Shown: in pieces, positions 4,301-34,120 of the stretch
How the letters are laid out: each line of letters begins with the position of its first letter
How positions within the stretch are numbered: position 1 is the first letter of the stretch
From: Thalia democratica
Taxonomy: Eukaryota
DNA: 64,000 bases
Reading direction: 5' to 3'
Assembly: GCA_965202585.1 (NCBI GenBank)
Contig: OZ241834.1
Location: 35,340,001 to 35,404,000, forward strand
The notes under the pieces: generated by a model
What the model was told of the DNA's origin: nothing
Seen by the model: the letters and a program-made list of their open reading frames with translations, nothing else
Database searches by the model: none
Translations under genes and position numbers: made by a program

Positions 4301-4717
4301 ATGATTGTGTTACAAAGTTCAACATGGTAATTCTGAGTGGGGTCGATGTGGTTGTTACTATTTAATCAATTTGAGTTGTGTGATAAGATATATATATATA
4401 TATCTTATAATAATATTAATATTATTATTAATATTATTATAATAAACTACAACTCACTGAAGATCACATGAAATTTTACATTTCAATGTGTGAAACAGGT
4501 GTTTAAATTATAGTTTTTATATAATTAAATAAATAAGTATATCTTACCTTATATATTATTATTTAATCAATTTGAGTTGTGTCATAAATATAAATATATA
4601 TATACTATTTTACCTAATAATCCTCAGAACCTTGGTTATTACTATTTAACCAATTTTAGTTGTGTGATAATTATGTATATTATGTAGTATTACATATATT
4701 ATAACACAACTATTAAG

Positions 4718-4751
<34 letters not shown>

Positions 4752-5024
4752 TAAATATAATTTATTGAAATGGCGATTTAAAAAATTCTGGAACATGTGT
4801 TTCATAAACCAAAGAAGATTGTTTCTAATCTTCAGCCAGTTTAAATTTAAAATAAAAAGCACTTTGGTAAACAAAGATGCAAAAGTTTACAAAAAAACAA
4901 AAACAATATGACGTAAGAATTGAACATTGTACATTACAAATATTCAGTACAAAAATCGATCTACCATCTAACTAAAGTGTTTAAGTTTAAACATTAACCT
5001 TATTTACATATATATATGTATATA

Positions 5025-5750
5025 TACTTAACAATCCTCAGAAATGCTTGATGGAACTATAGTTTTATGATGGAACTATAGTTTTATAATAAATTACATT
5101 ATAAATAATTAGATATTATAAATGACACTATTTACTTATGTTATTTTTCTCACCTAATAATCCTCAGAAATGCTTGATGAAAATATAGTTATATAATAAA
5201 TTACATCATAAATAATTAAATATTATAAATGACATTATTTATTTATGTTATTTTTCTCACCTAATAATCCTCAGAAATGCCTGATGGAAATATAGTTATA
5301 TAATAAATAACATCATAAATAATAAAATATTATAAAAGACATTATTTCTTTATGTTATTTTTCTCACCTAATAATCCTCAGAAATGCTTGATGGAAATAT
5401 AGTTATATAATAAATAAGATTATAAATAATTAATTATTTTTTACCTGATAATTCTCAGTGGGGCGTGGTGTGGTCTGCTGTCCCTCAAGTTTCTCAAAAA
5501 AACTTTGAAATTGTTCGCCATATCATTGTCCATATCCGGTACTTCCCACTAATAATAAATAAATATTAATAATTATATTGTTATTTGTGTTATATTAAGT
5601 TTGAAATCGTTCGCCATGCATTGTCCATATCCGGTACTTCCCACTAAAAAATCAAATAAATATTAATAATTATATTGTTATTCGTGTTATATTAAGTTTG
5701 AAATTATTCGCCATGTCATTATCCATGTCCGGAACTTCCTACTTAAAAAT
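5025..5750 (-). repeat. Donor-side (~117-bp unit, 3-4 copies) and acceptor-side (2 copies) echoes of SEC24 exon 20
   Basis: CTGAGGATTATTAG|GTGAGA repeats below 5444; AG|TGGGAAGTACCGGATATGGAC-like repeats at about 5600-5745. Confidence 0.85.
5445..5548 (-). CDS. SEC24: SEC24 exon 20 (WEVPDMDNDMANNFKVFLRNLRDSRPHHAPLRIIR)
   Basis: Matches the penultimate SEC24 segment (LR..RP....L.VIR); ttattag acceptor, AG|GTAAAA donor, phase 2. Confidence 0.85.
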
Positions 5751-6479
5751 CGAATTAACTATATTAATTGCTTTGAAAAAATATATAAACATTACAAACA
5801 AGTTGTAGGTGTACATGCACTTATACAGACTAAAGAACATTTTTAATTATAAACATTTTATAGAAACTAAACACACAACTGATTATACAACGAAAATTAA
5901 CTGCAATATCTAATTATGGGTTCTGAGAATACCTGAAAACTTTTGCTCTCCAAATACTATTTAAATCTAACTGAAAAAAAGTATAAACCCTTGTGTAATA
6001 AAAACAATAGTATAATACATGTAAATAAACATAAGCAATTATTATGGGCTCCCTTTAACCGTCGTAAAAATATGTAAAAGCAAGGGCAAAATAATCTAAT
6101 TCAGCTAGTCACAGGTTCCCTAATGAGAATTTCACAAACGCTGACGTATGACAAGGAAAACAGTTTAGTTCATTCTACAAACCGTTTGCTTCGGAAAATA
6201 AGTACTCATTTAAGTAAAATATCAAAAAAAAATTAAGGTGAACAGCACAAATTCTAATGATCTTTAAAAATTTTAAAAATGAAAAAAAAAACAGCTTGCC
6301 ACAGGTTCGGGAATATGTATTTGCCAACAAGTAAATAATCAAACAATATCAGATTGCAATAATTACAAATTATCTGACCATGGGTTTTAGAAATAGTTAG
6401 AACTGAGGCTAATTTTTTTGAAATATTACAATTATAATTTAACAAAACATTGGCTTCTAGGTCTATTGAAAAAAATTAA

Positions 6480-9400
6480 CTACAAAAAATCTAACCTATG
6501 GTTCAGGAATATCAGAGAACTCAAGTTAGTCTTGAATGAACTAGTGATAATCAAATGAAACAATAACAATTAAATAGTTAAATTAAATAATTGAACAATA
6601 TAAACAAAATTACCATTGGTTCAGGGATATCGGAGAACTGTGGCTTGTCAAGAACGTCTCGTATGAACTGGTGACAATCAAACAAAACAATAGCAACAAA
6701 TTAATTACAAAACATCTAACCATTGGTTCGGGGATATCGGAGAACTGAGGCTTGTCAAGAACGTCTTGTATGAACTGGTGACAATCAAATAAAACAATAA
6801 CAACAAATCAATTACAAAACATCTAACCATTGGTTCAGGAATATCGGAGAACTGAGGCTTGTCAAGAACGTCTCGTATGAACTGGTGACAATCAAATAAA
6901 ACAATAACAACAAATTAATTACAAAACATCTAACCATTGGTTCAAGAATATCGGAGAACTGAGGCTTGTCAAGAACGTCTTGTATGAACTGGTGACAATC
7001 AAATAAAACAATAACAACAAATTAATTACAAAATATCTAACCATGGGTTCAGGGATATCGGAGAACTGAGGCTTGTCAAGAACGTCTTGTATGAACTGGT
7101 GACAATCAAACAAAACAATAACAACAAATTAATTACAAAATATCTAACCATTGGTTCAGGAATATCGGAGAACTGAGGCTTGTCAAGAACGTCTCGTATG
7201 AACTGGTGACAATCAAATAAAACAATAACAACAAATCAATTACAAAACATCTAACCATTGGTTCAGGAATATCGGAGAAGTGTGGCTTGTCAAGAACGTC
7301 TTGTATGAACTGATGGCAATCAAATAAAACAATAACAACAAATCAATTACAAAACATCTAACCATTGGTTCAGGGATATCGGAGAACTGTGGCTTGTCAA
7401 GAACGTCTCGTATGAACTGATGACAATCAAATAAAACAATAACAACAAATTAATTACAAAACATCTAACCATTGGGTTCAGGGATATCGGAGAACTGAGG
7501 CTTGTCAAGAACGTCTCGTATGAACTGGTGACAATCAAATAAAACAATAACAACAAATCAATTACAAAACATCTAACCATTGGTTCAGGAATATCGGAGA
7601 AGTGTGGCTTGTCAAGAACGTCTTGTATGAACTGATGGCAATCAAATAAAACAATAACAACAAATCAATTACAAAACATCTAACCATTGGTTCAGGGATA
7701 TCGGAGAACTGTGGCTTGTCAAGAACGTCTCGTATGAACTGATGACAATCAAATAAAACAATAACAACAAATTAATTACAAAACATCTAACCATTGGGTT
7801 CAGGGATATCGGAGAACTGTGGCTTGTCAAGAACGTCTTGTATGAACTGGTGACAATCAAATAAAACAATAACAACAAATTAATTACAAAACATCTAACC
7901 ATTGGTTCAGGAATATCGGAGAACTGTGGCTTGTCAAGAACGTCTTGTATGAACTGGTAACAATCAAATAAAACAATAACAACAAATTAATTACAAAAAA
8001 TCTAACCATTGGTTCAGGAATATCGGAGAACTGAGGCTTGTCAAGAACGTCTTGTATGAACTGGTGACAATCAAATAAAACAATAACAACAAATTAATTA
8101 CAAAACATATAACCATTGGTTCAGGGATATCGGAGAAGTGTGGCTTGTCAAGAATGTCTTGTATGAACTGGTGACAATCAAATAAAACAATAACAACAAA
8201 TCAATTACAAAACATCTAACCATTGGTTCAGGGATATCGGAGAACTGTGGCTTGTCAAGAACGTCTTGTATGAACTGGTGACAATCAAATAAAACAATAA
8301 CAACAAATCAATTACAAAACATCTAACCATGGGTTCAGGGATATCGGAGAACTGTGGCTTGTCAAGAACGTCTTGTATGAACTGGTGACAATCAAATAAA
8401 ACAATAACAACAAACCAATTACAAAACATCTAACCATTGGTTCAGGGATATCGGAGAACTGTGGCTTGTCAAGAACGTCTTGTATGAACTGGTGACAATC
8501 AAATAAAACAATAACAACAAATTAATAACATAACATCTAACCATTGGTTCAGGAATATCGGAGAACTGTGGCTTGTCAAGAACGTCTTGTATGAACTGGT
8601 GACAATCAAATAAAACAATAACAACAAATTAATTACAAAATATCCAACCATTGGTTCAGGAATATCGGAGAACTGTGGCTTGTCAAGAACGTCTCGTATG
8701 AACTGGTGACAATCAAATAAACAATAACAACAAATTAACTACAAAATATCTAACCATAGGTTCAGGAGTATCGGAGAACTGTGGCTTGTCAAGAACGTCT
8801 TGTATAAACTGGTGACAATCAAATAAAACAATAACAACAAATCAATTACAAAACATCTAACCATTGGTTCAGGAATATCGGAGAACTGAGGCTTGTCAAG
8901 AACGTCTTGTATGAACTGGTGACAATCAAATAAAACAATAACAACAAATTAATTACAAAACATCTAACCATTGGTTCAGAGATATCGGAGAACTGTGGCT
9001 TGTCAAGAACGTCTTGTATGAACTGGTGACAATCAAATAAAACAATAACAACAAATCAATTACAAAACATCTAACCATTGGTTCAGAGATATCGGAGAAC
9101 TGTGGCTTGTCAAGAACGTCTCGTATGAACTGGTGACAATCAAATAAAACAATAACAACAAATCAATTACAAAACATCTCACCATTGGTTCAGGAATATC
9201 GGAAAACTGTGGCTTGTCAAGAAGGTCTCGTATGAACTGGTGACAGTAAAATAAAACAATAACAACAAATTAATTACAAAATATCTAACCATGGGTTCAA
9301 GAATATCGGAGAACTGTGGCTTGTCAAGAACGTCTTGTATGAACTGGTGACAATCAAATAAAACAATAACAACAAATCAATTACAAAATATCTAACCATT

Positions 9401-10787
9401 GGTTCAGGAATATCGGAGAACTGTGCCTTGTCAAGAACGTCTTGTATGAACTGGTGACAATCAAATAAAACAATAACAACAAATTAATTGCAAAATATCT
9501 AACCATTGGTTCAGGGATATCGGAGAACTGTAACTTGTCAAGAACGTCTCGTATGAACTGGTGACAATCAAATAAAACAATAACAACAAATTAATTACAA
9601 AACATCTAACCATTGGTTCAGGAATATCGGAGAACTGTGGCTTGTCGAGAACGTCTTGTATGAACTGGTGACAATCAAATAAAACAATAACAACAAATCA
9701 ATTACAAAACATCTAACCATTGGTTCAGGAATATCGGAGAACTGAGGCTTGTCAAGAACGTCTTGTATGAACTGGTGACAGTCAAATAAAACAATAACAA
9801 CAAATCAATTACAAAACATCTAACCATTGGTTCAGGAATATCGGAGAACTGAGGCTTGTCAAGAACGTCTTGTATGAACTGGTGACAATCAAATAAAACA
9901 ATAACAACAAATCAATTACAAAACATCTAACCATGGGTTCAGGTATATCGGAGAATTGTGGCTTGTCAAGAACGTCTTGTATGAACTGGTGACAATCAAA
10001 TAAAACAATAACAACAAATCAACTACAAAATATCTAACCATCGGTTCAGGGATATCGGAGAACTGAGGCTTGTCAAGAACGTCTTGTATGAACTGGTGAC
10101 AATCAAATAAAACAATAACAACAAATTAATTACAAAATATCTAACCATTGGTTCAGGGATATCGGAGAACTGTGGCTTGTCAAGAACATCTTGTATGAAC
10201 TGGTGGCAATCAAATAAAACAATAACAACAAATTAATTACAAAACATCTAACCATTGGTTCGGGGATATCGGAGAACTGAGGCTTGTCAAGAACGTCTTG
10301 TATGAACTGGTGACAATCAAATAAAACAATAACAACAAATTAACTACAAAATATCTAACCATTGGTTCAGGAATATTGGAGAACTGAGGCCTGCCAAGAA
10401 CGTCTTGTATGAACTGGTGACAATCAAATAAAACAATAACAACAAATTAATTACAAAACATCTAACCATTGGTTCAGGAATGTCGGAGAACTGTGACTTG
10501 TCAAGAACGTCTTGTATGAACTGGTGACAATCAAATAAAACAATAACAACAAATCAATTACAAAACATCTAACCATTGGTTCAGGAATATCAGAGAACTG
10601 TGGCTTGTCAAGAACGTCTTGTATGAACTGGTGACAATCAAATAAAACAATAACAACAAATTAGCTACAAAACATCTAACCATTGGTTCAGGGATATCGG
10701 AGAACTGAGGCTTGTCAAGAACGTCTCGTATGAACTGGTGACAATCAAATATAACAATAACAACAAATTAACTACAAAACATCTAAC
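6480..10787 (-). repeat. Tandem array, 107-bp unit, about 39 copies, made of the SEC24 exon 19 3' end plus donor and intron start
   Basis: Unit contains TTCATACAAGACGTTCTTGACAAGCCACAGTTCTCCGATATTCCTGAACCAATG|GTTAGA; period taken from 10788 vs 10681; decayed remnants extend to about 5900. Confidence 0.97.
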
Positions 10788-10985
10788 CATTGGTTCAGGG
10801 ATATCGGAGAACTGTGGCTTGTCAAGAACGTCTTGTATGAACTGGTGATCGCACTGTTTCCCTACTAGCATGTACATCTGCCACCCGCAATCCAACAGAT
10901 ACGCTCCTCTCATAGAAATCTTCTCACTTGAGGGCGGTAGCAAGTCGGGCGGAACGACGCATGTCCCGTCTTCCCTCTCCTCCGT
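10788..10985 (-). CDS. SEC24: SEC24 exon 19, gelsolin-like repeat (TEEREDG...SSEKISMRGAYLLDCG...FIQDVLDKPQFSDIPEPM)
   Basis: ORF 10665..10943; S.EK....GA.L.D.G motif; donor GTTAGA; phase 0-0. Confidence 0.93.
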
Positions 10986-11032
10986 CTGTTACGATTAAGT
11001 ATTTATTATTTGTAATATTTGTTTGTTTTGAT

Positions 11033-11265
11033 TAGTGATGTACTGGACTCACTATCCGGGTCCGGATCCGGCCGGATATTGCCATTTTTGTCTGATATCC
11101 GGATCCGGCCGGATCTTAATATGAAAAAAAAATCCGGATCCGGTTCCGGCCGGATTCTAATTTGAAAAAAAAAATCCGGATCCGGTTCCGGCCGGATTCT
11201 AGTTTGAAAAAAAAGTCCGGATCCGGCCGGATCCTAATTTAAAAAAAAAGTCCGGTACATCACTA
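11033..11265. mobile_element. hAT-type MITE (233 bp) with internal palindromic GGATCCGGCCGGAT repeats
   Basis: TIRs TAGTGATGTAC(T/C)GGAC at both ends; perfect 8-bp TSD GTTTTGAT at 11025-11032 and 11266-11273. Confidence 0.9.
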
Positions 11266-11520
11266 GTTTTGATTGAATGTTGAAATAATTATCTGAAAAA
11301 ACTAATACAAATAATGTGAATGGCACTCAAAAATATTTTTATGTAATTTAACACCAAAAAAAGTGTTTTCCATTTTTTAATAAATTGGTTGGTTTGTATT
11401 AAAAAACTTTAGTACGCGAAAATTAATATTTTAATATTTGATTGGATGTAAAACTAATAAATAAATTAAAAAAAAATCATCTTTGCTTAAAGTTAATACA
11501 ACAATAAACAAAATATTTAC

Positions 11521-11889: not shown

Positions 11890-14800
11890 ATAAGTAATTT
11901 AACTAACATGTTTCAAAAATGAGAGCAAACACATAGGAAACAGTTTAAGATTTTCAGGGACATATACACCCTGGTTATTGACAGGATTAAATAAAATACA
12001 TACGCATAATATCAAGTAACATGTTTAAGAAGACTGTGAAGATACATGGGGAACAATTTCAAATTTTCAGGGACGTATAAACCCTGGTTAATGGCAGGAA
12101 CAAATAAAATACATACGCATAACATCAACTAACATGTTTAAGAAGACTGTGAAGGTACATGGGGAACAGTTTAAGGTTTTCAGGGACGTATACACCCTGG
12201 TTATTTACAGGAACAAATAAAATATATACGCATAACATCAACTAACATGTTTAAGAAGACTGTGAAGGTACATGGGGAACAGTTTAAGGTTTTCAGGAAC
12301 ATATACACCCTGGTTATTGACAGGAACAAATAAAATATATACGCATAACATCAACTAACATGTTTAAGAAGACTGTGAAGATACATAGGGAACAGTTTAA
12401 GGTTTTCAGGGACGTACACACCCTGGTTATTGACAGGAACAAATAAAATATATACGCATAACATCAACTAACATGTTTAAGAAGACTGTGAAGGTACATG
12501 GGGAACAGTTTAAGGTTTTCAGGGACATATACACCCTGGTTATTGACAGGAACAAATAAAATATATACGCATAACATCAACTAACATGTTTAAGAAGACT
12601 GTGAAGGTACATGGGGAACAGTTTAAGGTTTTCAGGGACGTATACACCCTGGTTATTTACAGGAACAAATAAAATACATACGCATAACATCAACTAACAT
12701 GTTTAAGAAGACTGTGAAGGTACATGGGGAACAGTTTAAGGTTTTCAGGGACGTATACACCCTGGTTATTTACAGGAACAAATAAAATATATACGCATAA
12801 CATCAACTAACATGTTTAAAAAGACTGTGAAGATACATGGGGAACAGTTTAAGGTTTTCAGGGACGTATACACCCTGGTTATTGACAGGAACAAATAAAA
12901 TATATACGCATAACATCAACTAACATGTTTAAGAAGACTGTGAAGATACATGGGGAACAGTTTAAGGTTTTTAGGGACGTATACACCCTGGTTATTGACA
13001 GGAACAAATAAAATATATACGCATAACATCAACTAACATGTTTAAGAAGACTGTGAAGGTACATGGGGAACAGTTTAAGGTTTTCAGGGACGTATACACC
13101 CTGGTTATTGACAGGAACAAATAAAATATATACGCATAACATCAACAAACATGTTTAAGAAGACTGTGAAGGTACATGGGGAACAGTTTAAGGTTTTCAG
13201 GGACGTATACACCCTGATTATTGACAGGAACAAATAAAATATACACGCATAACATCAACTAACATGTTTAAGAAGACTGTGAAGATACATGGGGAACAGT
13301 TTAAGGTTTTCAGGGACGTATAAACCCTGGTTATTGACAGGAACAAATAAAATAAATACGCATAACATCAACTAACATGTTTAAGAAGACTGTGAAGATA
13401 CATGGGGAACAGTTTAAGGTTTTCAGGGACGTATACACCCTGGTTATTGACAGGAACAAATAAAATAAATACGCATAACATCAACTAACATGTTTAAGAA
13501 GACTGTGAAGGTACATGGGGAACAGTTTAAGGTTTTCAGGGACGTATACACCCTGATTATTGACAGGAACAAATAAAATATACACGCATAACATCAACTA
13601 ACATGTTTAAGAAGACTGTGAAGATACATGGGGAACAGTTTAAGGTTTTCAGGGACGTACACATCCTGGTTATTGACAGGAACAAATAAAATATATACGC
13701 ATAACATCAACTAACATGTTTAAGAAGACTGTGAAGGTACATGGGGAACAGTTTAAGGTTTTCAGGGACGTATACACCCTGGTTATTGACAGGAACAAAT
13801 AAAATATATACGCATAACATCAACTAACATGTTTAAGAAGACTGTGAAGGTACATGGGGAACAGTTTAAGGTTTTCAGGGACGTATACACCCTGGTTATT
13901 GACAGGAACAAATAAAATATATACGCACAATATCAACTAACATGTTTAAGAAGACTGTGAAGGTACATGGGGAACAGTTTAAGGTTTTCAGGGACGTATA
14001 CACCCTGGTTATTTACAGGAACAAATAAAATATAAACGCATAACATCAACTAACATGTTTAAGAAGACTGTGAAGGTACATGGGGAACAGTTTAAGGTTT
14101 TCAGGGACGTATACACCCTGGTTATTGACAGGAACAAATAAAATATACACGCATAACATCAACTAACATGTTTAAGAAGACTGTGAAGGTACATGGGGAA
14201 CAGTTTAAGGTTTTCAGGGACGTATAAACCCTGGTTATTGACAGGAACAAACAAAATATATACGCATAACATCAACTAACATGTTTAAGAAGACTGTGAA
14301 GATACATGGGGAACAATTTCAAATTTTCAGGGACATAAACACCCTGGTTATTGACAGGAACAAATAAAATATATACGCATAACATAAACTAACATGTTTA
14401 AGAAGACTGTGAAGATACATTTGGAACAGTTTAAGGTTTTCAGGGACGTATACACCCTGATTATTGACAGGAACAAATAAAATATATACGCATAACATCA
14501 ACTAACATGTTTAAGAAGACTGTGAAGGTACATGGGGAACAGTTTAAGGTTTTCAGGGACGTATACACCCTGATTATTGACAGGAACAAATAAAATATAC
14601 ACGCATAACATCAACTAACATGTTTAAGAAGACTGTGAAGGTACATGGGGAACAGTTTAAGGTTTTCAGGGACGTATACACCCTGGTTATTGACAGGAAC
14701 AAATAAAATATACACGCATAACATCAACTAACATGTTTAAGAAGACTGTGAAGATACATGGGGAACAGTTTAAGGTTTTCAGGGACATATACACCCTGGT

Positions 14801-15410
14801 TATTTACAGGAACAAATAAAATAAATACGCATAACATCGACTAACATGTTTAAGAAGACTGTGAAGATACATGGGGAACAGTTTAAGGTTTTCAGGGACA
14901 TATACACCCTGGTTATTGACAGGAACAAATAAAATATACACGCATAACATCAACTAACATGTTTAAGAAGACTGTGAAGATACATGGGGAACAGTTTGAG
15001 GTTTTCAGGGACGTACACACCCTGGTTATTGACAGGAACAAATAAAATATATACGCACAACATCAACTAACATGTTTAAGAAGACTGTGAAGATACATGG
15101 GGAACAGTTTAAGGTTTTCAGGGACGTATACACCCTGGTTATTGACAGGAACAAATAAAATATATACGCATAACATCAACTAACATGTTTAAGAAGACTG
15201 TGAAGGTACATGGGGAACAGTTTAAGGTTTTCAGGGACGTATACACCCTGGTTATTGACAGGAACAAATAAAATATATACGCATAACATCAACTAACATG
15301 TTTAAGAAGACTGTGAAGGTACATGGGGAACAGTTTAAGGTTTTCAGGGACGTACACACCCTGGTTATTGACAGGAACAAATAAAATATATACGCATAAT
15401 ATCAACTAAC
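11890..15410 (-). repeat. Tandem array, 113-bp unit, about 30-31 copies, made of the SEC24 exon 17 3' end plus donor
   Basis: Unit encodes (VPVNNQ)GVYVPENLKLFPMYLHSLLKH|GTTAGT; period taken from 15411 vs 15298. Confidence 0.97.
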
Positions 15411-15598
15411 ATGTTTAAGAAGACTGTGAAGGTACATGGGGAACAATTTAAGGTTTTCAGGGACGTATACACCCTGGTTATTTACAGGAACGCCCTTCTG
15501 TTTCAAGTGATGTTTGTAACATTTCAGCAGGTCCACTAACGCGTTCATGATGGAGTCTTTCGCGTCGGTTAACGTGTGCGTCATCGCCCTATCCACCG
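15411..15598 (-). CDS. SEC24: SEC24 exon 17 (VDRAMTHTLTDAKDSIMNALVD...VPENLKLFPMYLHSLLKH)
   Basis: ORF 15402..15596; helical-domain motif L.LFP....LLK; donor GTTAGT. Confidence 0.93.
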
Positions 15599-15934
15599 CT
15601 GTTATGACGTAATAAAGTGTTAAGAATATGAATTAATTATATAAATACTTTTATTTTATTAATATGTGCCTCACTGCTCTATACACCGCTGTTATGACGT
15701 AATAACAAAACTCAAATACATGTTTAATAATATGCCAAGTCAAACGTTATTATTATGAATTCAATTAACTGGTTATTAAAATTAAAAAAAAAAGAAGCTT
15801 GTACTTTAAATGCTTGGAAAAGTTTTTATTGTTAAAGATAACTAAAAACACTACATTAACTTCACATAAAAACTGAATTAAAACCAATATAATAAATTCA
15901 ATCATAGGTATTATAAAAAAAAATAGAAACGAAC

Positions 15935-16046: not shown

Positions 16047-16305
16047 CTGGAAATAAAACAAATAGTGTGAATTACTACATTAATAATTACAAAGTGTGAA
16101 TTCTAAAACGGCGTTCACCCTGAAAAATATTTAAATAAAAATAAAAATTGTGAATTCTAATGCGGCGTTCACCCTGAAAAATATCTAAATTAAAAATTAC
16201 AAAAGTGTGAATTCTAATACGGCGTTCACCCTAAAAATATAATGTGTGAGTAAAAATAGCAATAAAAACTATTAAGTGTGAATTTTTATTCTGCGTTCAC
16301 CCTAT
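16047..16305 (-). repeat. 4 copies of the acceptor plus SEC24 exon 16 5' end
   Basis: ag|GGTGAACGC...AGAATTCACA at about 16075-16110, 16150-16175, 16204-16232 and 16275-16303. Confidence 0.88.
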
Positions 16306-16579
16306 ATAATTAACAAAAATACTAAAGAGCGAACTAGTTTCTGTAATGTTTTCATTCAATCAAGTTATTTTACTTCTTCTATCTTTCTTAAGTCCTAATA
16401 ATAAACCTTATTGGCAATATATGTACTATCTTACCTTGTTAATGTTAATAAAAGCAACTTTTCTAAAAACTTTTAACCTTACTAGATGCATACAGCAACG
16501 CAGCTTGGAAGCAAACAGAATTAACTTCTAATAGTTATAACAAAAATAATAACATACATACCAACTATTGACTACAAAC

Positions 16580-16749
16580 CTTACTAGATGTATACAATAA
16601 TGCAGCTTGGAAGCAAACGGAATTAACTTCTAACGTTTCGTCAATCTGCATTTGTACAGCGTATCCGGCGTCAGGGTTTATATTTGCAAGTGCCAATAAA
16701 TCAGGCGCTCTGGAGTATTTATTGCCATAGAAAGTGTTGAATGTTAGTC
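16580..16749 (-). CDS. SEC24: SEC24 exon 15 (LTFNTFYGN...LANINPDAGYAVQM...FQAALLYTSSK)
   Basis: Conserved NPDAGYAVQM and FQ.ALLYTSSK motifs. Confidence 0.95.
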
Positions 16750-17124
16750 CTATTAAAAATAAGTAATTATAAAACGCTGTATTTTCATATATGTGTTACC
16801 ATAGAGCGTATTAAATTTTAGACCTACTACAAAAAGAAACAATAATTGAGAAGTAATTAATAAGTTAGGTGATCTACTTTATTTCTTGCTATGGAGTTTG
16901 TTGAATGTTAATTCTGAGTTGCAGTTAATTTAAAAGAATTAAAAAATAATTCAAACTCTAATGCACAAATGTATTTGCTCCCATAAAATATATTAATTTA
17001 TACATTGCAGTGAAAAATAATTTCTTAAAATTTACTTTGTATATTAAGTCTGTGTTACTCTATAAAATATCAACAAGTATTTATTTCAAAGACAACGTTT
17101 ACATTTGAAAAAACAAAAACAAAC

Positions 17125-17561: not shown

Positions 17562-17940
17562 CTGTAAGAATAAATTTATTAATATATTAGTATAAGTATA
17601 TGTAACTTTATATTTCGAATCTCTCCCGCTGAATGTCTGCTAGCGTTTGCTGTAAGAATAAATTTATTGAAATATTAGTATAAGTATATGTAACTTTATA
17701 TTTCGAATTTGTTCCGCTGAGTGCCTGCTGGCGTTTGCTGTTAAAATAAATTTATTAATATATTAGTATAAGTATATGTAACTTTATATTTCGAATTTAT
17801 TCCGCTGAATGTCTGCTGGCGTTTGCTGTAAAATATAAGTATAAATAAAATTTTCGTATGTACAATATTTATTTATAGGTAGCTTTGTAGTAACGAATTT
17901 CTACAAATGAATGTCTGCTAACGTTTGCTGTAAGAATAAG
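17562..17940 (-). repeat. 4 tandem ~88-100-bp copies of the acceptor plus SEC24 exon 13 5' end
   Basis: cag|CAAACGC.AGCAG.CA.TCAGCGG in each copy. Confidence 0.9.
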
Positions 17941-18075
17941 GTTAGTATATTTATATATTTTATTTACGATCAAAAAAAAAACATCGGCGAAATTCTACCA
18001 AAGCAAAAGCCTGGACTTTCCTGTACCATGAGACAAGCTCAAATTAAATAAAGTTTTGATCAAACCACAAAGATC

Positions 18076-19836: not shown

Positions 19837-20207
19837 CAGGGTTGCCAAAGGTTTTTGGAAATTTTTCTCCAGGTTTTTAAAAGTACACATTTTTGGGTCT
19901 ATTTTAAGTTTAAAATTAAGTTTAAGATAAGAACTGTGTTAAATAATAAAAAAAAAACATTGAAAAGATACTCTAAAGCTACTTTGAAATGTTTTTTAAA
20001 GTAAAAAAAAAGTATGATGACGAAAAAATTTTTATTTTATATGATATATTTTTTGTGTCAAATCAAAATTTTAATACTTTACATGTTAAAAGTTTTAATG
20101 AGTTTTGTTCAAAATTCCAGGTTTATTTAGTTTTCTTATTTGTCAAATTCCAGGTTTTTTAGCCTAAATTGTCAAATTCCTGGTTCTCAGGTTTATTGGC
20201 AACCCTG
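19837..20207. mobile_element. MITE, CAGGGTTGCCA-TIR family (copy 1)
   Basis: TIRs CAGGGTTGCCAA/TTGGCAACCCTG; flanks TTCATC/TTCATT (6-bp TSD with 1 mismatch); internal ttccagg repeats shared with the other copies. Confidence 0.85.
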
Positions 20208-20666
20208 TTCATTGTATTTATTTGTTTTAATTAAATATGGAAGTTTTAATAAGTCTTACCGGAGGTGGAGTATCTCTTGTTGGCTGGTTTTCGGGTACAA
20301 CACATAAAATTAGTATTTTATTTATATTGCTACCTATCTAATCTATTATTGCACCAGAAAAAAGTGTTTGATTTTTCAAGTGTTTTACTGTTTCAAAGGC
20401 TTTCTACCCTGAGTACATACAAGCTTCTCACTTTTTACTACTAGGTAAATTATGATCTTATTTTACTTCTTTTAGACTTATTCATCATTTTATTTTATTA
20501 AAGTAGTTTTAATTTTTTAATTTATTGGATAAATATACCAAAGGTCGACGTTTTACAGGAAAACACAAGATTTCGTCGGATAATTAATAATGATAAAAAC
20601 ATATTTTGTAAAATCATATTAATTATTTATATTAAAACTAAATTTATATTGTGACGTCACACCAAC

Positions 20667-20843: not shown

Positions 20844-22399
20844 CTGTGGAAATAATCTAATTATTTTCATGCACAAATGTATGATAAATTTATACTTTAG
20901 TATAATTTTTTTTTTCGAAACACCCTGATTCTACCACTGGTCTTTTTGTGTCAAGAACAACAAACATTTTGTTGGTTATACTTTTTTTGTTGTAAACGGG
21001 AAAGAAGGTTTGATGATATATATTCAAATAATGTTTGTTGAATTATGTCGATAAAATTAAAAAGTCAATTAAATGATACAGATGTGTATCTAGATGTGGC
21101 TTTAAATTTGTGCAGTTCTTCAAAATTTTGAGTTTAAAAAAATCAGGAATATTTATTAGCAAATAATGGTAATGTTTTAACAAACTTGAAAAACTTATGT
21201 TTTTAGTGTTAAAAGCATTAAAATAAAGAAAAAACATTGATACTTTCGGAAAATAACATAATATCTATTTTTTTTAACAAAAGTGATAAAAATATTTACC
21301 TATGTTACAATTTTTAATTTATTTTTTTTTCCTTTATAACTTTGTATATATTGAGTGTCTTGTGTACTTTTAGTAAATAGTTTATCAACTTATAAGTTGT
21401 TAATTAAGACTTTATTTTACCGAAAAATTAGTGATAGCTTGATAAAAAAAACTTAATTTATTTTTGTAAAAACTTAAAAAGAATATTTCAAAGTTTTATA
21501 GTTACTTAAACATAATATAAGATAGTAGCTAATTACAAAAAATTATAAACTTTTAAAATAAATGTGTCAAAAAACAGCTAAATTAACTTACTACAAAAAA
21601 AATGCACTAATGATCGACTTTAACAAGCTGTAGCAATGAGTTACAAATATTTTAGTAAAAAATCAATCAATTTTGAGTAAAAGTAATATATCCTGTTGCG
21701 ACTGATAATTTTAACTGATATGAGATAACTTATCTGGGCTAAGCATAATATAAATAAAAGTAAAATTCTATTTATTGGAATAAACTTACTTTGAAAATTA
21801 AAACCATTTTGTTAACTATGCATAACATATATAGATACAGTTGATTACAACTTGAGCTATAAAATAATTTTATATTTTGTTAGCATTATCTAGTTATTAA
21901 TAAAAACTTGTCGTAAAGCGTTTTACAATGAGTATTTGAGTCGTTTAAATTATGATTAAAAATTAATTAATTTTGAGTTTGTGTTTTAATTGTCGTATGT
22001 AAAAAAATATTAATCCAATAAGAAACCACAAAAGCGAAAACATAAGGTCAGCCTTAGTTTCTTTAAATTACAACTAAAAATTACTTCATAAGCTTGTAAG
22101 CCAAAATTGATTTAATTTTTATAAAAATTGAGACTTGGATAAGTTTTTCAAACACTTGTATCAAATAAAACTTAAAAATTTTTACCATAATTTCAAAACA
22201 AGAAGAGCTCCGAAATTGCATAAGTGTTTATATCATTTAAAACAAATAATTACTAGTCAAAAAACAAACAAAACAACTTAAAATCAAATTAATCAAACAA
22301 CATTTCAAGGGATTGTATTAAGAGCTGCTACAAATACAGAATAAAAATAACTAAAATTGTTTTGTATAAAAAAATAATTAATATACCTATATAAAATAA

Positions 22400-23140
22400 T
22401 TATACAATATTTCAACAGACATTTTAACTGCTCCCAAAGATGAGTTTAACAAAACAAATTTAATGCAACAAACCATCATTTCTACAGAAATTTTAAGAGT
22501 AGCTCTCAAATAAGAGCATGTGTTAATATAATAAAAAAAAAAACTTGGAGATAAATAAACAAATATATATTTTATATAACAAACCATCATCTCGACTGAG
22601 ATCTTCATGGCTGCTCCCAGTGATGAATATGTGTCCGCATCGTCGTAAGGAGAATCTGGTGTCTGATGCACCGAAGGAAGATCGTTCAAGAACTCAACGA
22701 CCTGTTCCTTGCATTCGTGCAAGTTTACTAGCAAGTTCTCAGCAGTTGGAATGAAGGCATCTGTAAAGTATAAATATTTCGTTTAAGTATAAAATAGTAT
22801 TTATTAACTGGAAAACAATTTAAAGTATTCTAGATTCGTGCAAATTTACTAAGCAGTTGTCATTTGTTAGTTAAAAGGCGTCTGTAGTAAAAAAACAAGT
22901 ATCTAATATTAGTCTGTTGGTATATATCAATTATTTTAAACTCGTATGTTTATTTATTTTAATAGTTAATAAGTTCTTAGCAGTAAGTATAAATAGTTGG
23001 AATGAATGCGTCTGAAATGAAAAAGTGATTTAACATACTTGTTTTTATTATTATATATATACATTTAAAGACAATTGATTATTCTTCATTCGTGGAAATT
23101 TGCAAAGAAGTTCTCAGCAGTTGGTATAAAGTCATCTAAT
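22400..23140 (-). repeat. Decayed donor-side (2) and acceptor-side (3) echoes of SEC24 exon 10
   Basis: LRATLKISVEMM|gt at 22474-22512; SSLGAVKMSVEIL at 22405-22444; cag|D(A/D)F(IPT) copies at about 22840-22885, 22995-23020 and 23080-23137. Confidence 0.8.
22585..22760 (-). CDS. SEC24: SEC24 exon 10 (AFIPTAENLLVNLHECKE...SSLGAAMKISVEMM)
   Basis: ORF 22387..22734; conserved FIP..NLLVNL.E.KE motif; canonical splice sites. Confidence 0.93.
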
Positions 23141-25707: not shown

Positions 25708-26703
25708 CTGTGATATAAAAATATTGAGTTAAATAATGATCAAATAAATATGTTAACTTTATCTGAGCGTACAACTATGTAATATAAAAACACATGTAAA
25801 TAATGTTTACAACAAAAAAAAACATAATTTTTTCAAGTTTTTAATTAGGCTCTATGATTAAGATATGATTTTAATAATGTTTACAATTAATATACAGAAA
25901 CTTGTCGAAAAAAAAAATTTGTCTTCTTATATGATTTGTAAAGCTTATCATTGTTTAAATAGTTAAAACAACTTGGTCACTAAAGATCTGTTTTGAATGA
26001 CATATTTTATATGAAGTATTAAGAATAACAAATTTTCTTAGCCTAACAGAATTTAAATTCTTGATTTTTTATATTATGATTTGTTATTAAAAAAAAAATG
26101 AAATTTTAACTATAAAAACAATGAAAAAAACATACAATGTTTACTATAATGATTTATTTGTAAAACTAGATCATGTTTTACTACAAAATAAAACTTTGTA
26201 AATTTTATGTACTCAAAAATTTTCATAACTTTTAAAAGTTTTAATTTACTTTTTTTAGTTATTAACAGGAAACTAGGCTTTAACACACTTTCTTACTCAT
26301 TAAATTTCCGGATATTCACAATACTTTGTTAAAATAAACTTTCAATTATTTGATTTTATAATTCAATACAAAATGGTTCTTAGTCATCATATAACTTATG
26401 GTTTTTTCATTAACAAACACTGCTACTTTCGTAAATATTTTAAAATAAGTGTAAAAGTGTTTCAAATTTTAAAACTATAAAACCAGAATAAGATAAACTA
26501 AATTTTATAAGCACCAAATATATAAAACTAACCAACTTTTAGTTCAACATACTATTTTGGTAAATACTCTTTTAATTTTAAAAAACTATTTTAATTTCAA
26601 AACTATAAAACCACATTAAAATAAATTAATATTTTACTATAAGGTGCCTTATAAGCATCCAATATATATATGTAAAATAATAAACAACAAACAATTTACG
26701 AAC

Positions 26704-26810: not shown

Positions 26811-28170
26811 CTAGAAATAGAATAAGTTATATATTATATTGATTCTATACTAGTTTTAACAACAAAATCAGGTATACGGCCGGTTGTGGAGGTCTCAACA
26901 TGTACTCTTGTGGGGCTAGAAATAGAATAAGTTATATATTATATTGATTCTATACTAGTTTTAACAACAAAATCAGATATACGGCCGGTTGAGGAGGTCT
27001 CAACATGTACTCTTGTGGTGCTGTGAGTAGAATAAGTTATATATTATATTGATTCTATACTAGTTTTAACAACAAAATCAGGTATACGGCCGGTTGTGGA
27101 GGTCTCAACATGTACTCTTGTGGGGCTAGAAATAGAATAAGTTATACATTATATTGATTCTATACTAGTTTTAACAACAAAATCAGGTATACGGCCGGTT
27201 GAGGTGGCCTCAACATGTACTCTTGTGGTGCTAAAAATAGAATAAGTTATATATTATATTGATTCTATACTAGTTTTAACAACAAAATCAGGTATACGGC
27301 CGGTTGAGGTGGTCTCAACATGTACTCTTGTGGAGCTAAAAATAGAATAAGTTATATATTATATTGATTCTATACTAGTTTTAACAACAAAATCAGGTAT
27401 ACGGCCGGTTGAGGTGGTCTCAACATGTACTCTTGTGGAGCTAAAAATAGAATAAGTTATATATTATATTGATTCTATACTAGTTTTAACAACAAAATCA
27501 GGTATACGGCCGGTTGTGGAGGTCTCAACATGTACTCTTGTGGAGCTAAAAATAGAATAAGTTATATATTATATTGATTCTATACTAGTTTTAACAACAA
27601 AATCAGGTATACGGCCGGTTGTGGAGGTCTCAACATGTACTCTTGTGGAGCTAAAAATAGAATAAGTTATATATTATATTGATTCTATACTAGTTTTAAC
27701 AACAAAATCAGGTATACGGCCGGTTGTGGAGGTCTCAACATGTACTCTTGTGGAGCTAAAAATAGAATAAGTTATATATTATATTGATTCTATACTAGTT
27801 TTAACAACAAAATCAGGTATACGGCCGGTTGAGGTGGTCTCAACATGTACTCTTGTGGAGCTAAAAATAGAATAAGTTATATATTATATTGATTCTATAC
27901 TAGTTTTAACAACAAAATCAGGTATACGGCCGGTTGAGGTGGTCTCAACATGTACTCTTGTGGAGCTAAAAATAGAATAAGTTATATATTATATTGATTC
28001 TATACTAGTTTTAACAACAAAATCAGGTATACGGCCGGTTGAGGTGGTCTCAACATGTACTCTTGTGGTGCTGTGAATAGAATAAGTTATATATTATATT
28101 GATTCTATACTAGTTTTAACAACAAAATCAGGTATACGGCCGGTTGTGGTGGTCTCAACATGTACTCTTG
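26811..28170 (-). repeat. Tandem array, 105-bp unit, 13 copies, made of the acceptor plus SEC24 exon 8 5' end
   Basis: Unit reads AG|(A)[18 protein letters not shown]; period taken from 26811 vs 26916; two decayed copies at about 28215-28380. Confidence 0.97.
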
Positions 28171-31100
28171 TGGTGCTGTGAGTGAAAACAATGATTATAA
28201 TTATTTGTATTAATTATTCAGCAAAATTAGACATATCTGGTTGAGGGTAACTTAACATATATTCTTGTGAAGCTAAAAATAAGTTGTACACTATAGTCAT
28301 TTTATACTAGTTTTAACAATAAAGTACGGTATATAAATGTTGCAGTGGTCTTAACAAGTATTCCTGTGGAGCTGCTAGACAAACTAAATTACAATTTAAT
28401 TTTAAAGGTAAATTAGCAAAATACAAAATACAAGCTACTATTATAATACCATTAAAATGATAAACCACTTGCCATTGAAATTAGTTTGAGAAAAATTTAC
28501 GTTGCAAAGGTCCTTAGTATTCAAAAACTGCCGTACTTTATAAAAGGTATTGAAGACGTTTCAAAAATTATATTTTATTAAAACTTCACGATTAAAATTT
28601 TATAACAAAAAAAATCACACAGAGAGAAGTTTAAAACAAAGAAAATTAATTATTGTTTCTACTTTTTTATACCAATAATGCGTTTTTGTGCAAAATCTAA
28701 AATTTAATTACACTGATTTATAATCTATACAAGATAGAAAAAAAGTATACAGTATATTTTACAATGTGTTGTAAGCTTTTGACAAGTAGGTATATAACAG
28801 GAAATTATTAAAAGCAAAATTTCATTACTATACAACAAGCTGAATTGCTTAGAAAATTAGTTTAAAAACGTTAAAATGAGTAAACCAAGATACGTTGAAT
28901 TTTACCATTTAGTTAATAAATTACTATTTTTGATCATTTTAAAATTGGTATTGAATTTGTTTGTCGTACTTTAATGTTTATTGAAAAAAAAGCCAAAGAG
29001 CAAACATTACAAAAGCAAATATTTTGTTTTTTGAAATTTATTAGCTTTTTCAAATAACAAACTTTTACACTTTAAAACTCAACGTTTAAAATTCTTGTTC
29101 GTAAAACCACTTACAATTTCATGTAAACTTACAATTTCATGTAAACTATTTGGTATTTTGCATGATAACGGTTTTTCTGCTTCAATTAACCGAAAACAAC
29201 ATCATTTCCCCAGAGAGCAAATTGAAAACACTCCAGGTAAATTTACGAAGCAAATAAATAAGAATGAAAATAGATGATTTAAAATATAAGATGCAAAAAC
29301 TATTGGAAATTAACATTAACAAAAAAACATTTTTATTTATTAGGTCTATTTCATAGAATGTTTAAAAAGTAAATAAATAAGAATGAAAATAGATGATTAA
29401 AAATATAAGATGCAGACAAAATGATTGGAAATTTCTTTAACAACAGAAAACATTTTTTCAATGTATAAGGGCTATTCCGTGAAATACTTTTTTTAGCGTT
29501 GCTTTATAGCACTAAGTCACTATTTATCCAGGTAAATATACAAAGTAAATAAATAAGAGTGAAAAATAAGTAGCTAAAATGATATTTCAAAGATAAAATG
29601 TACAGTATAGAGGTGCAAATATTATTTTAATAAAATGCAAAATTTCAAGAACATTATTTCATTTAACATAACTACTTTTTAAGTTGCTTAATAGCACAAA
29701 GTCACTATTTATAGTAATTGATAATCAAACACACTAAAAGTTTATTTACTTTAATTACACGAAATTGTAATTAAAGTAAATAAATAACAAAAAAATAAAA
29801 TAAAAAGTTAAAATTAAGTTGTTTAAATAAAAGATGCAGAAAAATTAATTGAAAATATTTTTTAACAACTTTTTTTTAAGTATCAAAACTACTCCATGTA
29901 ATTTATAATTTTAAACTGCTTAACAGTACAAAGTCATTATTTACTGTAATTTATAAGTAAACACACCATAAGTAAATAATCAAAGTAAATAAACAACAAA
30001 ACAGAAACGTCATGGTTAACAAGTGCTTACATATACACGTCATAATAACTCAGTTGTGAGAAATTAATTTACTGGAAAATTGCATTGACAAGTATAGTAA
30101 ACAACTCATGAAAACACTGTTTTTTTACAAAAAAATACATTTAATAGTACAAAATTATTATACTTATGATAATTGTACTTCGGATAAAATAAGATTAACA
30201 AACAATTTTTTTTAAATGATACTAATTAATATTGTGGGAAATTATATTGAAAAATTTCCCATTGAAGTAGTCAACAATTGATGAAAATCAATATGTTTTT
30301 GTGTGAATAAAAATATAATATAAGGGTAAAATAATTTATCGTCATAATACTTCAAACGATATCAATGAATTAACTGTTTGCAACATCATTGAATTTTTTT
30401 TTTTTGAATTTTTGTGCAGCAGACGATTCATAAAAATCAATTTATAAAGTGGAATTAAATAAAAATTAATTATTGACCTTGTATACTCAAATGTTTTTTT
30501 TGGGTAAATATGATACTTTAAATGTGTTTTAAAGAATAAATTAAAGTTTTATGTGAAAATATAAAAAGGTTCATTGGAATAAAGGTTCCAAATATAAACT
30601 TGATAGTATGTTTTTCTTTCAAATCACAAAATAACAGTAAATTATTTATATATATATATATATATTGTGATTAAAATCGTTATCTTTGATAAACAAAAAT
30701 ATTTAAATACAAACATCAAACTTGTCATAATATATGCATGAGATCTTCAAGCGCATGAAACTTGAAGATCAAATTTTAAAGAAAAGCAACCTTTTAAAAG
30801 CAACTTTTTTAAAGCAAGATTTTAAAGTGTATGTTTTTAATATACAACAATCCATGAAATACTTAAAGCCGAATTAGGCGCAATAACAAAATAATATGAA
30901 ATAGAGTTTTTTTTGATTAAAACAAACTTTTAAACAAGTATGCTTTATTATAATTTTAACTTTAATAAAATAAATTCTATTTTAGAGTGCGTATTCAATT
31001 TTAAAAGTTTCCAAAAAACACTTGAAATCGAATTAAGCGCTTACCACACATACGAAAGCATATGGAATACACAAAAAATTATATGCGAGCGCAAATGTGT

Positions 31101-32669
31101 TGCGTAAGATACTCGCTTCTCATTGGCTTAAAACTTCGTCACGCTTCGGTAATCAGACACGTTGATTTTACTTGAAACTTAAAAACGAGAGAATTAAAAG
31201 TTTTTTCTTTTTTCAAAATTTCGAGAGAATGAGTTTTTGAACGTTGGACTTTTGGTTCGGCCGAATTTTTGATGAAATTTCATGAGTAATTCGATACTCA
31301 TTACTATTTGTAATAAAAATAAATCAACAAGCTTGAAAGAAGAAAAACCCAAACTTAAAAAAACAATAAAAATTTTCAATAAAACTTACTGAAAATTTAA
31401 AAATATATTAAACTTATCAAAAACTACAATGGGTATAAACATTTATATCGAAACAATATGAGTAACTTGATATTGTAATAGAAGTTAAGTAGCATGAATT
31501 TTTATAAAATTACTCAACCAGAAATTGAAATATAATTTATTAATAATTTTTAAGAATATAAATGGTTTTAACGAAAGTGATCATTCAAGTAAAATATTAA
31601 AAAAAGTCAAAATTCATGATAAATAAGTAATTAAATAAAATATTATATAAGTATTTTGATAGTAATAAAAGTCAAGTTCTTATAATTTTGTCAACTATTT
31701 ACTAACAAAACTCACCGCAAAATTTTTAAAATTAAAATGTTTCGTATAAAATTCATTTTTACAAATTTATCGTTCAAATGAATTAATAACTTAAAATATG
31801 TAAAAAAAAAGTAATTAATTGCAAACTATTAACAAATTTTAAGTTAAAATGTACTACATTTACAAAAAAAATCGACATTCCGAACTAACAAAAGAATTTT
31901 AATCAATAGAACAATATTCAAAACAGGTTAGGAATTTATGAATGAAAAGCAGACAATAACAAAAATATTTTGAATTTTATAAAATGAAGAAAAATAAACG
32001 TAATAAGTAATAAATCAATAAAAATAAGTATTTTTGAAAAGAAGCTAAAAACTTTTATTTAATTTAACTTTAAAGTGGGTTTAAGCAAACAACTAATTAT
32101 CATTAAAAGCATCATGACTTGTTTTAAAAAAAAAACTCAGATTAGAAAATTATAAAAGCTTTAAAAAATGCATTTATTTGTTTGGTTTTTAATTGTCTTT
32201 GTATAATTTTTATAGCTTTAAATAATAATTTTATACTCTTACCTTACTTTTTTTAGTTATATATAAAACGTAAATTAATACAAACAAAAACTGATAAATA
32301 CTTTTATACTTAATCAGATTGTTTTTTATATGTTTATACATTTTTAAATAAAAAGTTCAATAAAAATGGTGTATTCATTAGGAAAAGATTATAGAATATT
32401 ATAAATGATAAAACTTTTCATATATTATCCATAATAGCGTTAATGCAACAGGTGTTTCGAACCCTGAACATCTTTACCCAATTCACTGTATACAAGACAT
32501 GAATTTAATCCAAAAACTATAACAGTAATAAAAAAGTGAAAAAAATCAATAAATATCAACTTAAAGGCTCCAACAACACGCCTAAATAACCAATAAAATC
32601 ACCTAAATCACTATTAAAATCACTAAACAAACGACAACCTGACACACTTAGTTGTGCTACATACTGTAC

Positions 32670-33382
32670 CAGTTAATCCAGTGGTGGATATGGCATACTC
32701 AGATATTGCATGGGGCTCCCTAAACGTCTTTGTAACCAGTAAAAACTCATTTAACTCTAAAAAACAATTTACCAATTAACTCAACCGTACTATTCGTGCA
32801 CTCTAACCTTGTATGAGACGCTCTAAACCCAGTAGCCCACAAAACTCATCAACTCCAATAAAACCCCTTAATTTAAAATAAAAACAATTATTCTAACCGA
32901 TAAACTCGATAGTCGAATTCGTGCACTCGGGCCTAGTGTGAGGCTCCCCATACATTTTAGTAACTCAAAAAACCCTTTACCCAATAAAACCTCTTAACAG
33001 CATCAAAAACTACTAACCAATAAACTCGATGGCCGAATTCGTGCACTCTGGCCTGGTGTGAGGCTCCCCATACGTTCTAGTAACTCAAAAAATCCCCTAA
33101 AACCCATAAAACCTCTTAACAGCATCAAAAACAACCAACCGATAAACTCGATAGTCGAATTCGTGCACTCGTGCCTTGTGTGAGGCTCCCCATACGTTCT
33201 AGTAACTCAAAAAATCCCCTTAATCCCATAAAACTTCCTAACAGCATCAAAAACAACTAACCGATAAACTCGATAGTTGAATTCGTGCACTCTGGCCTGG
33301 TGTGAGGCTCCCCATACGTTTTAGTAACTCAAAAATCCCCTTAATCCCATAAAACTTTTTAACAGCACCAAAAACAACTAAC
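32670..33382 (-). repeat. About 6 tandem ~120-bp copies of the SEC24 exon 7 3' end plus donor, decaying distally
   Basis: VT(K/R)TYGEPHTRPECTNSTIEFI|GTTAGT is recognisable in successive copies. Confidence 0.92.
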
Positions 33383-33583
33383 CAATGAACTCAATAGTCG
33401 AATTCGTGCACTCTGGCCTGGTGTGAGGCTCCCCGAACGTCTTGGTAACGGGGTGGTGCTGAAACTCTTCAGGGGTGTCGTTCAGCGAGTAGCAGATGTT
33501 GCACCTCCATTTCCTGCCGTTCTCGGTGAACGAAACAAAGGGGTTGATGTAGGTCCTGCAGCGGCGACACCTGGTGATGGTAC
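33383..33583 (-). CDS. SEC24: SEC24 exon 7, zinc finger (TITRCRRCRTYINPFV...WRCNICYSLN...GEPHTRPECTNSTIEFI)
   Basis: Sec23/24 CxxC...CxxC zinc finger; ccttcag acceptor, G|GTTAGT donor. Confidence 0.95.
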
Positions 33584-34120
33584 CTGAAGGATACGCGTTT
33601 TGTCTGTTTGGAACTATTTACACGGAAAAATATTAAGTATAAACACTTTATGTAGTTGAATTGTTTTTAATTATTGAATTTTCTAATCAAATCATTTATT
33701 TCTAAGAATCGAGAAGGTTTAATTAGTTATTGTTGATAAACATGGGTATACTTAAAAACCTTCTACCTATTAATGCAATTGTTTAACAGATTTAATAATC
33801 TGGGAAGATAAGTGCATTCATTGACACAGGGGTCTGACTACACAGATATAAGAAATTCCCCTAAATAAACATACTTTTATCTGCAGTAATAACTGGAAAA
33901 AAAATAAAAAAAAATCCTTTAAAATATGTAGTTATATGGCATACGTATTTGTTCGTATTTAACCAATTCAAATAAGTACCTGCAGTAATTACAGGCAGTG
34001 GAATTATGAGATTTTAATTACAACATGCATATTTATAAGGCAGATGATTAATATTTTTTAAATACTCAAGTATCATTCAACTAAACAACACAGCAGTTGA
34101 GCTTCAATTCAAATAAATAC

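Follow-up and report, generated by a model that had tools for sequence, protein, structure and literature searches.

Repeats of splice junctions and the SEC24 arrays

Repetition of a splice junction has been reported at single loci. In the human F7 gene, intron 7 carries a variable number tandem repeat (VNTR), a 37-bp minisatellite whose first unit lies across the exon 7 donor; splicing takes place at the most upstream site, and the pseudo-donors behind it stay silent (PMC1557585). In FGG, a tandem duplication of the exon 8-intron 8 junction is pathogenic (PMC9052919), and the Rogers model of intron gain involves tandem duplication of an exon segment that contains AG/GT (PMC3265369, PMC2891723, PMC4974935). 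Here we describe junction repeats in a window of 64,000 nt from Thalia democratica (GenBank:GCA_965202585.1, contig OZ241834.1, positions 35,340,001 to 35,404,000; coordinates below are those of the window), in which a SEC24A/B-like gene, located on the minus strand from 36250 down to 5445, carries copies of its own exon ends in the adjacent introns. These copies are referred to as echoes, and the exon end belonging to the reading frame as the live one. The variation found in the echoes suggests that they are probably minisatellites anchored at splice junctions, which, in a population of very high diversity, evolve in concert with the live end of the exon.

The SEC24 arrays resemble the F7 VNTR in that their units span an exon-intron boundary and an authentic donor is followed by silent, identical pseudo-donors. 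F7, however, is one locus with few units on the donor side only (PMC1557585), whereas the arrays described here involve 16 junctions of SEC24 as well as other genes, lie on donor and acceptor sides, reach about 40 units, and show codon-periodic variation that is shared with live alleles. The FGG duplication is one deleterious event (PMC9052919), in contrast to the tolerated class seen here. As in the intron-gain model, a short tandem duplication makes extra splice signals and duplicated coding sequence turns intronic, but the SEC24 arrays lengthen an existing intron, include old intron sequence, and then multiply and homogenise; instead of creating an intron at a non-ancestral position, each array adjoins an intron that interrupts the alignment to SEC24 relatives. 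Tandemly duplicated and mutually exclusive exons are likewise homologous coding segments side by side, which have splice signals of their own and diverge as coding sequence does, but they are whole exons with both splice sites and appear in the mRNA, whereas the SEC24 echoes contain 19-81 nt of always one exon end only, have the splice site of one side, and are absent from mRNA contigs, with no RNA depth over the arrays checked.

With concerted evolution, as known for minisatellites, ribosomal DNA and pseudogene-templated conversion, the SEC24 arrays share homogeneity despite an old origin, mosaic units, decayed edges and higher-order repeats. The difference is that in SEC24 one terminal unit is under protein selection and appears to imprint a coding signature on its non-coding sister units, for which no description was found in the literature searched. 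Nor did a full-text literature search yield, beyond single loci, any account of junction arrays as a class, whether across a gene or a genome, or of codon-periodic variation in such arrays, and junction arrays are not mentioned in the chaetognath genome paper.

The exons were mapped by tblastn with a 1121-aa SEC24 relative (P0002) and the Sec24B of Nymphon striatum (P0008), and their boundaries were refined by splice motifs. Similarity to these proteins covered aa 365-1083, matches to PF04811 fell on exons of the window, and E17 gave one match only when used as a protein search query. The 18 mapped exons (E1-E18), when joined, form a single uninterrupted reading frame of 1022 aa. Judged by these similarities, the gene is SEC24, predicted to encode the COPII cargo adaptor, its zinc-finger, trunk, beta-sandwich, helical and gelsolin parts having been matched jointly, not singly scored.

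Architecture and reality of the junction arrays

Nine arrays with a period of at least 40 were detected within the gene by Tandem Repeats Finder (TRF), and eight of them adjoin an exon boundary. When five arrays were printed in register, the live exon end was each time the terminal unit of a head-to-tail repeat. On the donor side a unit is laid out as exon tail, GT and intron head, and on the acceptor side as intron tail, AG and exon head, with periods of 54-122 bp across the arrays. The donor-side array of E17 (6480-10787, minus strand as all echoes of this gene) has 39-40 units of 107 bp, the distal ones decayed, as seen by TRF and in register; each unit consists of 60 nt of exon tail (HQFIQDVLDKPQFSDIPEPM), then GTTAGAT... 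within 47 nt of intron head, and GT is retained in 37 of 39 copies. The donor-side array of E15 (11901-15410) comprises 31 units of 113 bp, made up of 81 nt of exon tail and 32 nt of intron head, with GT in 31/31 copies. On the acceptor side, the E6 array (26811-28373) has a period of 105 bp and contains 13 young and 2 decayed units, each with 49 nt of intron tail, AG and 56 nt of exon head, and AG is present in 15/15.

An original prediction, made from the letters of the window, had placed echoes at exons 6, 7, 8, 10, 13, 15, 16, 17, 19 and 20; with the likely further upstream exon added, our E4-E18 would be exons 6-20 of that numbering. The ten exons correspond, in that order, to E4, E5, E6, E8, E11, E13, E14, E15, E17 and E18, and echoes were found at all ten; E7 and E9, beyond the ten, have weak echoes as well.

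Junction probes of 70 nt (45 nt of exon and 25 nt of intron) were searched against the adjacent and the non-adjacent introns. Copies were present in the adjacent intron for 16 of the 35 junctions, amounting to 116 copies, compared with 2 in all non-adjacent introns together. At a score of at least 50, 9/35 junctions had a copy versus 3/86 interior-intron windows (Fisher p = 7e-4), and the comparison of exon boundaries with intronic DNA that had been proposed earlier therefore came out as an enrichment at junctions. Weak echoes at the E9 and E15 acceptors were realigned onto the live junction and so left out of the counts, which are in this respect conservative. The splice dinucleotides were largely kept, as had also been claimed, with GT in 81/83 donor copies and AG in 30/33 acceptor copies.

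The genome is highly heterozygous, a known cause of false duplications, and the arrays could accordingly be suspected of being false tandem duplications assembled from haplotypes, or chimeras of amplification, a reading to which we give practically no credence. Two haplotypes cannot yield 39 and 31 slightly different units. Word depth in bin 15300-15490, which covers the 113-bp unit, was 1052 in run X6 against about 42 for single-copy contigs, that is about 25 times single copy, and 1487 in X9, both of which fit tens of copies in independent runs. Contigs of X9, derived from a sister taxon, pass through the echo regions 16149-16569 and 16715-17023 at 7-10% divergence, and in a relative with 83-86% identical exons, represented by a Tara Oceans metagenome contig (L027), the donors of E13 and E15 and the acceptor of E14 are accompanied by echoes; X9 and L027 thus carry echoes at the same junctions, and echoes also occur in paralogues on another chromosome. 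The arrays are real, not products of assembly, and the check for artefacts suggested with the original prediction, made here on contigs and k-mers, not raw long reads, was one that they withstood. At the E15 donor, L027, which is another species and a short-read assembly, shows 1 degenerate unit where the present genome has 31.

Synonymous variation and exchange with the live exon end

Every copy was aligned to its own live junction, each distinct difference was counted once, and every possible single-base change was scored as seen or unseen. Pooled over the 16 junctions, 99 of 401 possible synonymous changes were seen (24.7%), compared with 72 of 1480 nonsynonymous changes (4.9%) and 61 of 1005 changes in the intron-derived flanks (6.1%). 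After Mantel-Haenszel stratification by 12 mutation types, with CpG kept separate, the odds ratio (OR) was 5.3 for synonymous versus nonsynonymous changes (p = 7e-23), 3.8 for synonymous versus intron changes (p = 9e-13) and 0.66 for nonsynonymous versus intron changes (p = 0.04), so that the synonymous bias proposed for the copies was borne out. The proposed drift of the copies towards AT-ending codons was also recovered, since silent changes ran from GC to AT in 53 of 128 possible cases and from AT to GC in 32 of 182. This lean was examined as a base-composition artefact and rejected, as stratification for mutation type and CpG did not remove the excess.

With shared ancestry counted once, the omega-like ratio was about 0.2 overall and below 0.3 at almost every single junction, and the value near neutrality that had been named beforehand as speaking against coding-like evolution of the copies was not observed. 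In the three big arrays the ratio was about 0.1 for variants present in at least two units and about 0.35 for singletons. No stop codon occurs in the 70 copies of the two largest arrays (E17 and E15), and the live peptide is encoded exactly by 23 of the 31 copies in the 113-bp array and by 16 of the 39 in the 107-bp array.

The population is extremely diverse. Two E13 alleles expressed in one individual differ at 14 of 170 nt (16579-16748), a contig of the second haplotype (16101-16441) differs, along some 340 nt of intron, by 37 substitutions and 22 gaps, introns diverge by at least 10% with indels, and the differences between RNA and assembly lie almost all at third codon positions. Part of this diversity is found again in the arrays. 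A spliced metatranscriptome contig from run X1, which covers the whole of E15, has three differences from the assembled live tail (15446, 15468 and 15483), and echo copy 1 of the 113-bp array carries exactly these three variants; at 15446, run X7 has CTG, which is the consensus of the 113-bp array. Among the expressed synonymous variants at echo-covered sites of E11, E13 and E15, 8/13 have an echo variant with the same base at the same position, as against a null expectation of 17-21% (p = 5e-4).

Such hyperdiversity, with expressed alleles differing at silent positions, would also be expected if the echoes were one-off fossils whose silent excess arose by allelic replacement of the live exon, in the absence of any paralogous exchange; the old single echoes at 22510 and 33998, which differ from the live exon at silent sites only, agree with this as well. 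We nevertheless regard passive snapshots of this kind as unlikely, since variants among the units of one array on one haplotype also give a ratio of 0.1-0.35, where mutation after expansion should give 1. Furthermore, the units are mosaics: a four-gamete test on the 113-bp unit revealed all four combinations in 17 of 36 pairs of common variants. A third point concerns age. The E15 donor of L027 has an identical 32-nt intron head followed by GTTCCT..., the same unit breakpoint, in one degenerate copy only; the founding duplication is therefore older than the split from L027, across which exons are 14-17% diverged and introns are mostly unalignable. Yet in their exon-derived part 30 of the 31 copies in the 113-bp array are 90-99% identical to the live tail, mostly at least 94%. 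A breakpoint this old, together with such similarity to the present live tail, therefore points to continuing homogenisation in which the live end takes part.

Two further points were set aside. A TCT>AGC serine switch in the L027 echo was not used as evidence, as an indel explains it equally well. A paralogue as the sequence donor was rejected, the region 22420-22780 having no second genomic locus and the peptide encoded by the homologous exon being different in the SEC24 paralogues.

Within the two big arrays, no gradient of identity to the live exon was seen with distance. The 107-bp array has, in its copies 22 and 24, exact matches to the live exon tail, decay is confined to the last 1-2 distal units (90% and 77% in the 113-bp array), and identity among the 107-bp units peaks at lag 3, the array containing a recent higher-order duplication of 3 units. 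The statement that the copies nearest the exon are the most similar consequently holds for the short series, which decay with distance, but not for the two big arrays, and the polarised growth derived from it was not seen in the big arrays when identity was set against unit index. Polarised growth is also not needed, because unequal exchange yields internal 3-unit higher-order repeats and decay at the distal edge only.

Concerted evolution of junction-anchored minisatellites with the live exon end, which we consider the probable explanation, would begin with the tandem duplication of a 54-122-bp segment across a splice junction (microhomology was about 2 nt at the single breakpoint examined), whereby the working exon end would become the terminal unit of an otherwise intronic array. 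The outermost site alone would be chosen for splicing, and the inner copies would be removed with the intron. Growth, shrinkage and homogenisation would proceed by unequal exchange and gene conversion among the units, the live terminal unit included. In a population this diverse, exchange between haplotypes would therefore move distinct exon-end alleles in and out, former live exon ends entering the array and array units entering the live position. Protein selection would screen the live position only, and the arrays would fill with synonymous alleles above a lower level of decay without selection; in which direction and in which molecular form exchange takes place is what we infer from these patterns. 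Among the mechanisms offered with the original prediction, copies that cycle through, or exchange with, the live position fit best, given the ratio of about 0.2, the sharing with expressed alleles, the mosaics and the similarity kept across the species split. More tentatively, and with reservations that outweigh our confidence, we suggest that the introns may form a heritable, selection-filtered archive of exon-end alleles, each re-installable by a single unequal exchange, and that such junction-seeded arrays may be an undescribed class present genome-wide, the genome-wide part being based on 130 kb of random loci and two paralogue loci.

Several points weigh against concerted evolution with the live exon end. 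The sharing of variants is perhaps partly due to recurrent mutation at mutable third positions, and sites and variants within an array are not fully independent, which makes the very small p-values optimistic. The RNA and DNA evidence consists of k-mer contigs, not reads, in which copy number per haplotype, rare isoforms and the choice of live unit in other haplotypes are not directly visible. In addition, variants are about as scarce in the intron-derived part of the units as at replacement sites, although simple exchange of whole units between haplotypes should bring in polymorphism of the intron, too; perhaps only the exon-derived homology takes part in exchange, the introns of other haplotypes being too diverged. 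Finally, junctions are favoured over intron interiors roughly 70-fold, which the model itself leaves unexplained. A possible reason is that haplotypes whose introns have diverged too far to pair retain lasting homology at exon ends only.

Direct coding selection would provide another source of the silent excess if the echo units were real micro-exons, with inclusion or regulation coupled to nonsense-mediated decay (NMD). GT or AG is retained in 111 of the 116 copies, the two big arrays are free of stop codons, and the 107- and 113-bp units offer a short GT-AG intron with an in-frame cassette of 54 or 63 nt. Two RNA joints from metatranscriptomes also sit on the echo acceptors 16229 and 17649, and at E11 the joints of X1 and X2 fall on the nearest echo head. 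The two joints at 16229 and 17649, however, have 25 nt on the echo side only, a length at which an echo and an allelic live exon cannot be told apart, and their use as evidence of echo splicing was rejected; we read them as allelic live exons that resemble the nearest echo in that sample. RNA contigs were placed on echo copies instead of the live exon.

Depth in run X7 was confined to exons, by which the run is recognised as a transcriptome, made from a different sample of the same species. One of its contigs (494 nt) has E14 joined to E15 at the live sites and continues into the next exon from the live donor 15411, and depth was zero over the acceptor arrays of E14 and E11 (bins 16064-16254 and 17592-17782). 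Most unit lengths (88, 97, 107, 113 and 122) are not divisible by three, the smallest introns confirmed measure 278-375 nt versus the 50-53 nt needed, and selection through NMD only would leave missense changes undepleted. Micro-exons are thus very improbable as the source of the coding signature, and the alternative splicing that had been listed among the candidate mechanisms is unsupported, although contigs leave room for rare or low-level use. As far as the contigs go, only the outermost site is used, be it the first donor or the last acceptor, and the inner copies of the splice sites are silent.

A programmed or somatic collapse of the arrays that swaps exon ends had also been listed. It appears extremely improbable, as X6, at about 25 times the single-copy depth, comes close to the number of copies assembled, and no joints deleting units were seen in the region covered, this being a weak test.

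If concerted evolution between exon ends and junction arrays is general, untranslated DNA can bear the substitution signature of protein-coding sequence through exchange with a selected neighbour, which is a caveat for the prediction of exons and micro-exons from dN/dS. It would also give introns a concrete way, still operating, of growing from their own boundaries, offer natural arrays in which up to 40 identical donors or acceptors allow the spliceosome's choice of the outermost site to be studied, and tie extreme heterozygosity to structural mutation at exon edges. Annotation is affected as well, since in such genes neither gene finders nor read mappers will put exon ends and alleles in the right place. 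Should the introns truly archive exon-end alleles, they would represent a previously undescribed feature class of gene structure and a new route of intron growth.

Further echoes, gene structure and other loci

The remaining echoes of the gene are shorter series or single copies. On the donor side, E5 has a series of 5 units of about 122 bp (32760-33382), which decay with distance. The E13 echo (16475-16531) covers 18 codons with 4 synonymous differences and 1 replacement difference, retains GT, and has an ortholog in L027. Echoes of the E18 donor span 4526-5444 and comprise a 107-bp x 3.5 array at 5068-5438 together with copies at 4589-4627 and 4526-4553. Of the E4 echoes (33878-33998), the nearer copy reads CCT GTA ATT versus CCA GTT ATC in the live exon, all three differences being synonymous, and of the E8 echoes (22430-22510) one reads AAA ATT TCT GTA GAA versus the live AAG ATC TCA GTC GAG.

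On the acceptor side, series of 4 units were found at E11 (17562-17947, 88 bp) and at E14 (16047-16317, about 54 bp), the relative L027 also having the E14 series. E18 has 2 units of 97 bp (5549-5768), E8 has 3 echoes (22837-23137) and E13 has 2 weak ones (16790-16910). Single weak echoes lie at E7 (25834-25858) and E9 (20919-20951), and a junction-probe match was obtained for the E15 acceptor (15659-15705). The sole purely intronic array of period at least 40 in the gene, located at 11097-11255, has 41-42-bp units with a palindromic core, TCCGGCCGGA, and an A-run; unlike the echoes, it may be a foldback element.

Exons E1-E6 are located at 36250-35458, 35052-34970, 34599-34484, 34245-34121, 33613-33383 and 26810-26704, E7-E12 at 25707-25566, 22760-22585, 20843-20667, 18459-18405, 17561-17459 and 17180-17125, and E13-E18 at 16749-16580, 16046-15935, 15598-15411, 11652-11521, 10985-10788 and 5548-5445, respectively, all on the minus strand. 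Five GT..AG joints were recovered exactly in RNA contigs (15598/15935, 16045/16579, 16748/17124, 17180/17459 and 17561/18405), confirming introns of 278-843 nt. Upstream of E1, an open frame at 37966-38376 (minus strand) is rich in Pro, Gln and Asn in the style of a SEC24 N-terminus; it is probably an additional upstream coding exon, because E1 begins behind an acceptor and stays in frame. The last exon or exons, encoding the C-terminus, were sought and not placed. Outside exons the window is AT-rich, with about 25% G+C.

Two paralogues of the SEC24 family lie on another chromosome (contig C5, 6.74 and 6.05 Mb), about 685 kb apart, and each has a 98-bp x 2.5 acceptor-side echo array (L016 1287-1780 and L018 1285-1780) and a donor-side echo. 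The same 98-bp array is present in both, and the arrays therefore outlived the gene duplication. In the 130 kb of random loci of the genome, five arrays were found, two of which look junction-derived. The assembly measures 802 Mb, with nine chromosome-scale contigs (at least 35 Mb and up to 117 Mb), and contains many Sec23/24-family loci; reads match marine metatranscriptomes, a picture that suggests a planktonic animal rich in gene duplicates.

A neighbouring gene on the plus strand (48880-52035) has a Lys/Ser-rich exon with 30-bp coding repeats (49288-49996). In this gene, donor-like units (GAAAG/GTATTTA) are repeated at 50764-51430 with a spacing of about 120 bp, and an acceptor-like unit (CAATAG/ATGAAAC) occurs twice, at 51863 and at 51985. 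A second gene of the window may thus have echoes.

An intronic element of SEC24 at 19693-20265 had a word depth of 1e5-1e6 in DNA runs and one in the thousands in RNA runs; it shows numerous joints inside it as well as loose ends, and is a very high-copy dispersed repeat. Short motifs related to it (TTTTCCAGGTTTTCCAAATTTCT) occur again at 25-76 and 56565-56609. In AT-rich DNA at 53765-54090 there is a tandem array of about 10 units of 30-36 bp (GTTTTAGTTGAATTGACATGTGCAAATGTCAT), which is unrelated to any exon seen.

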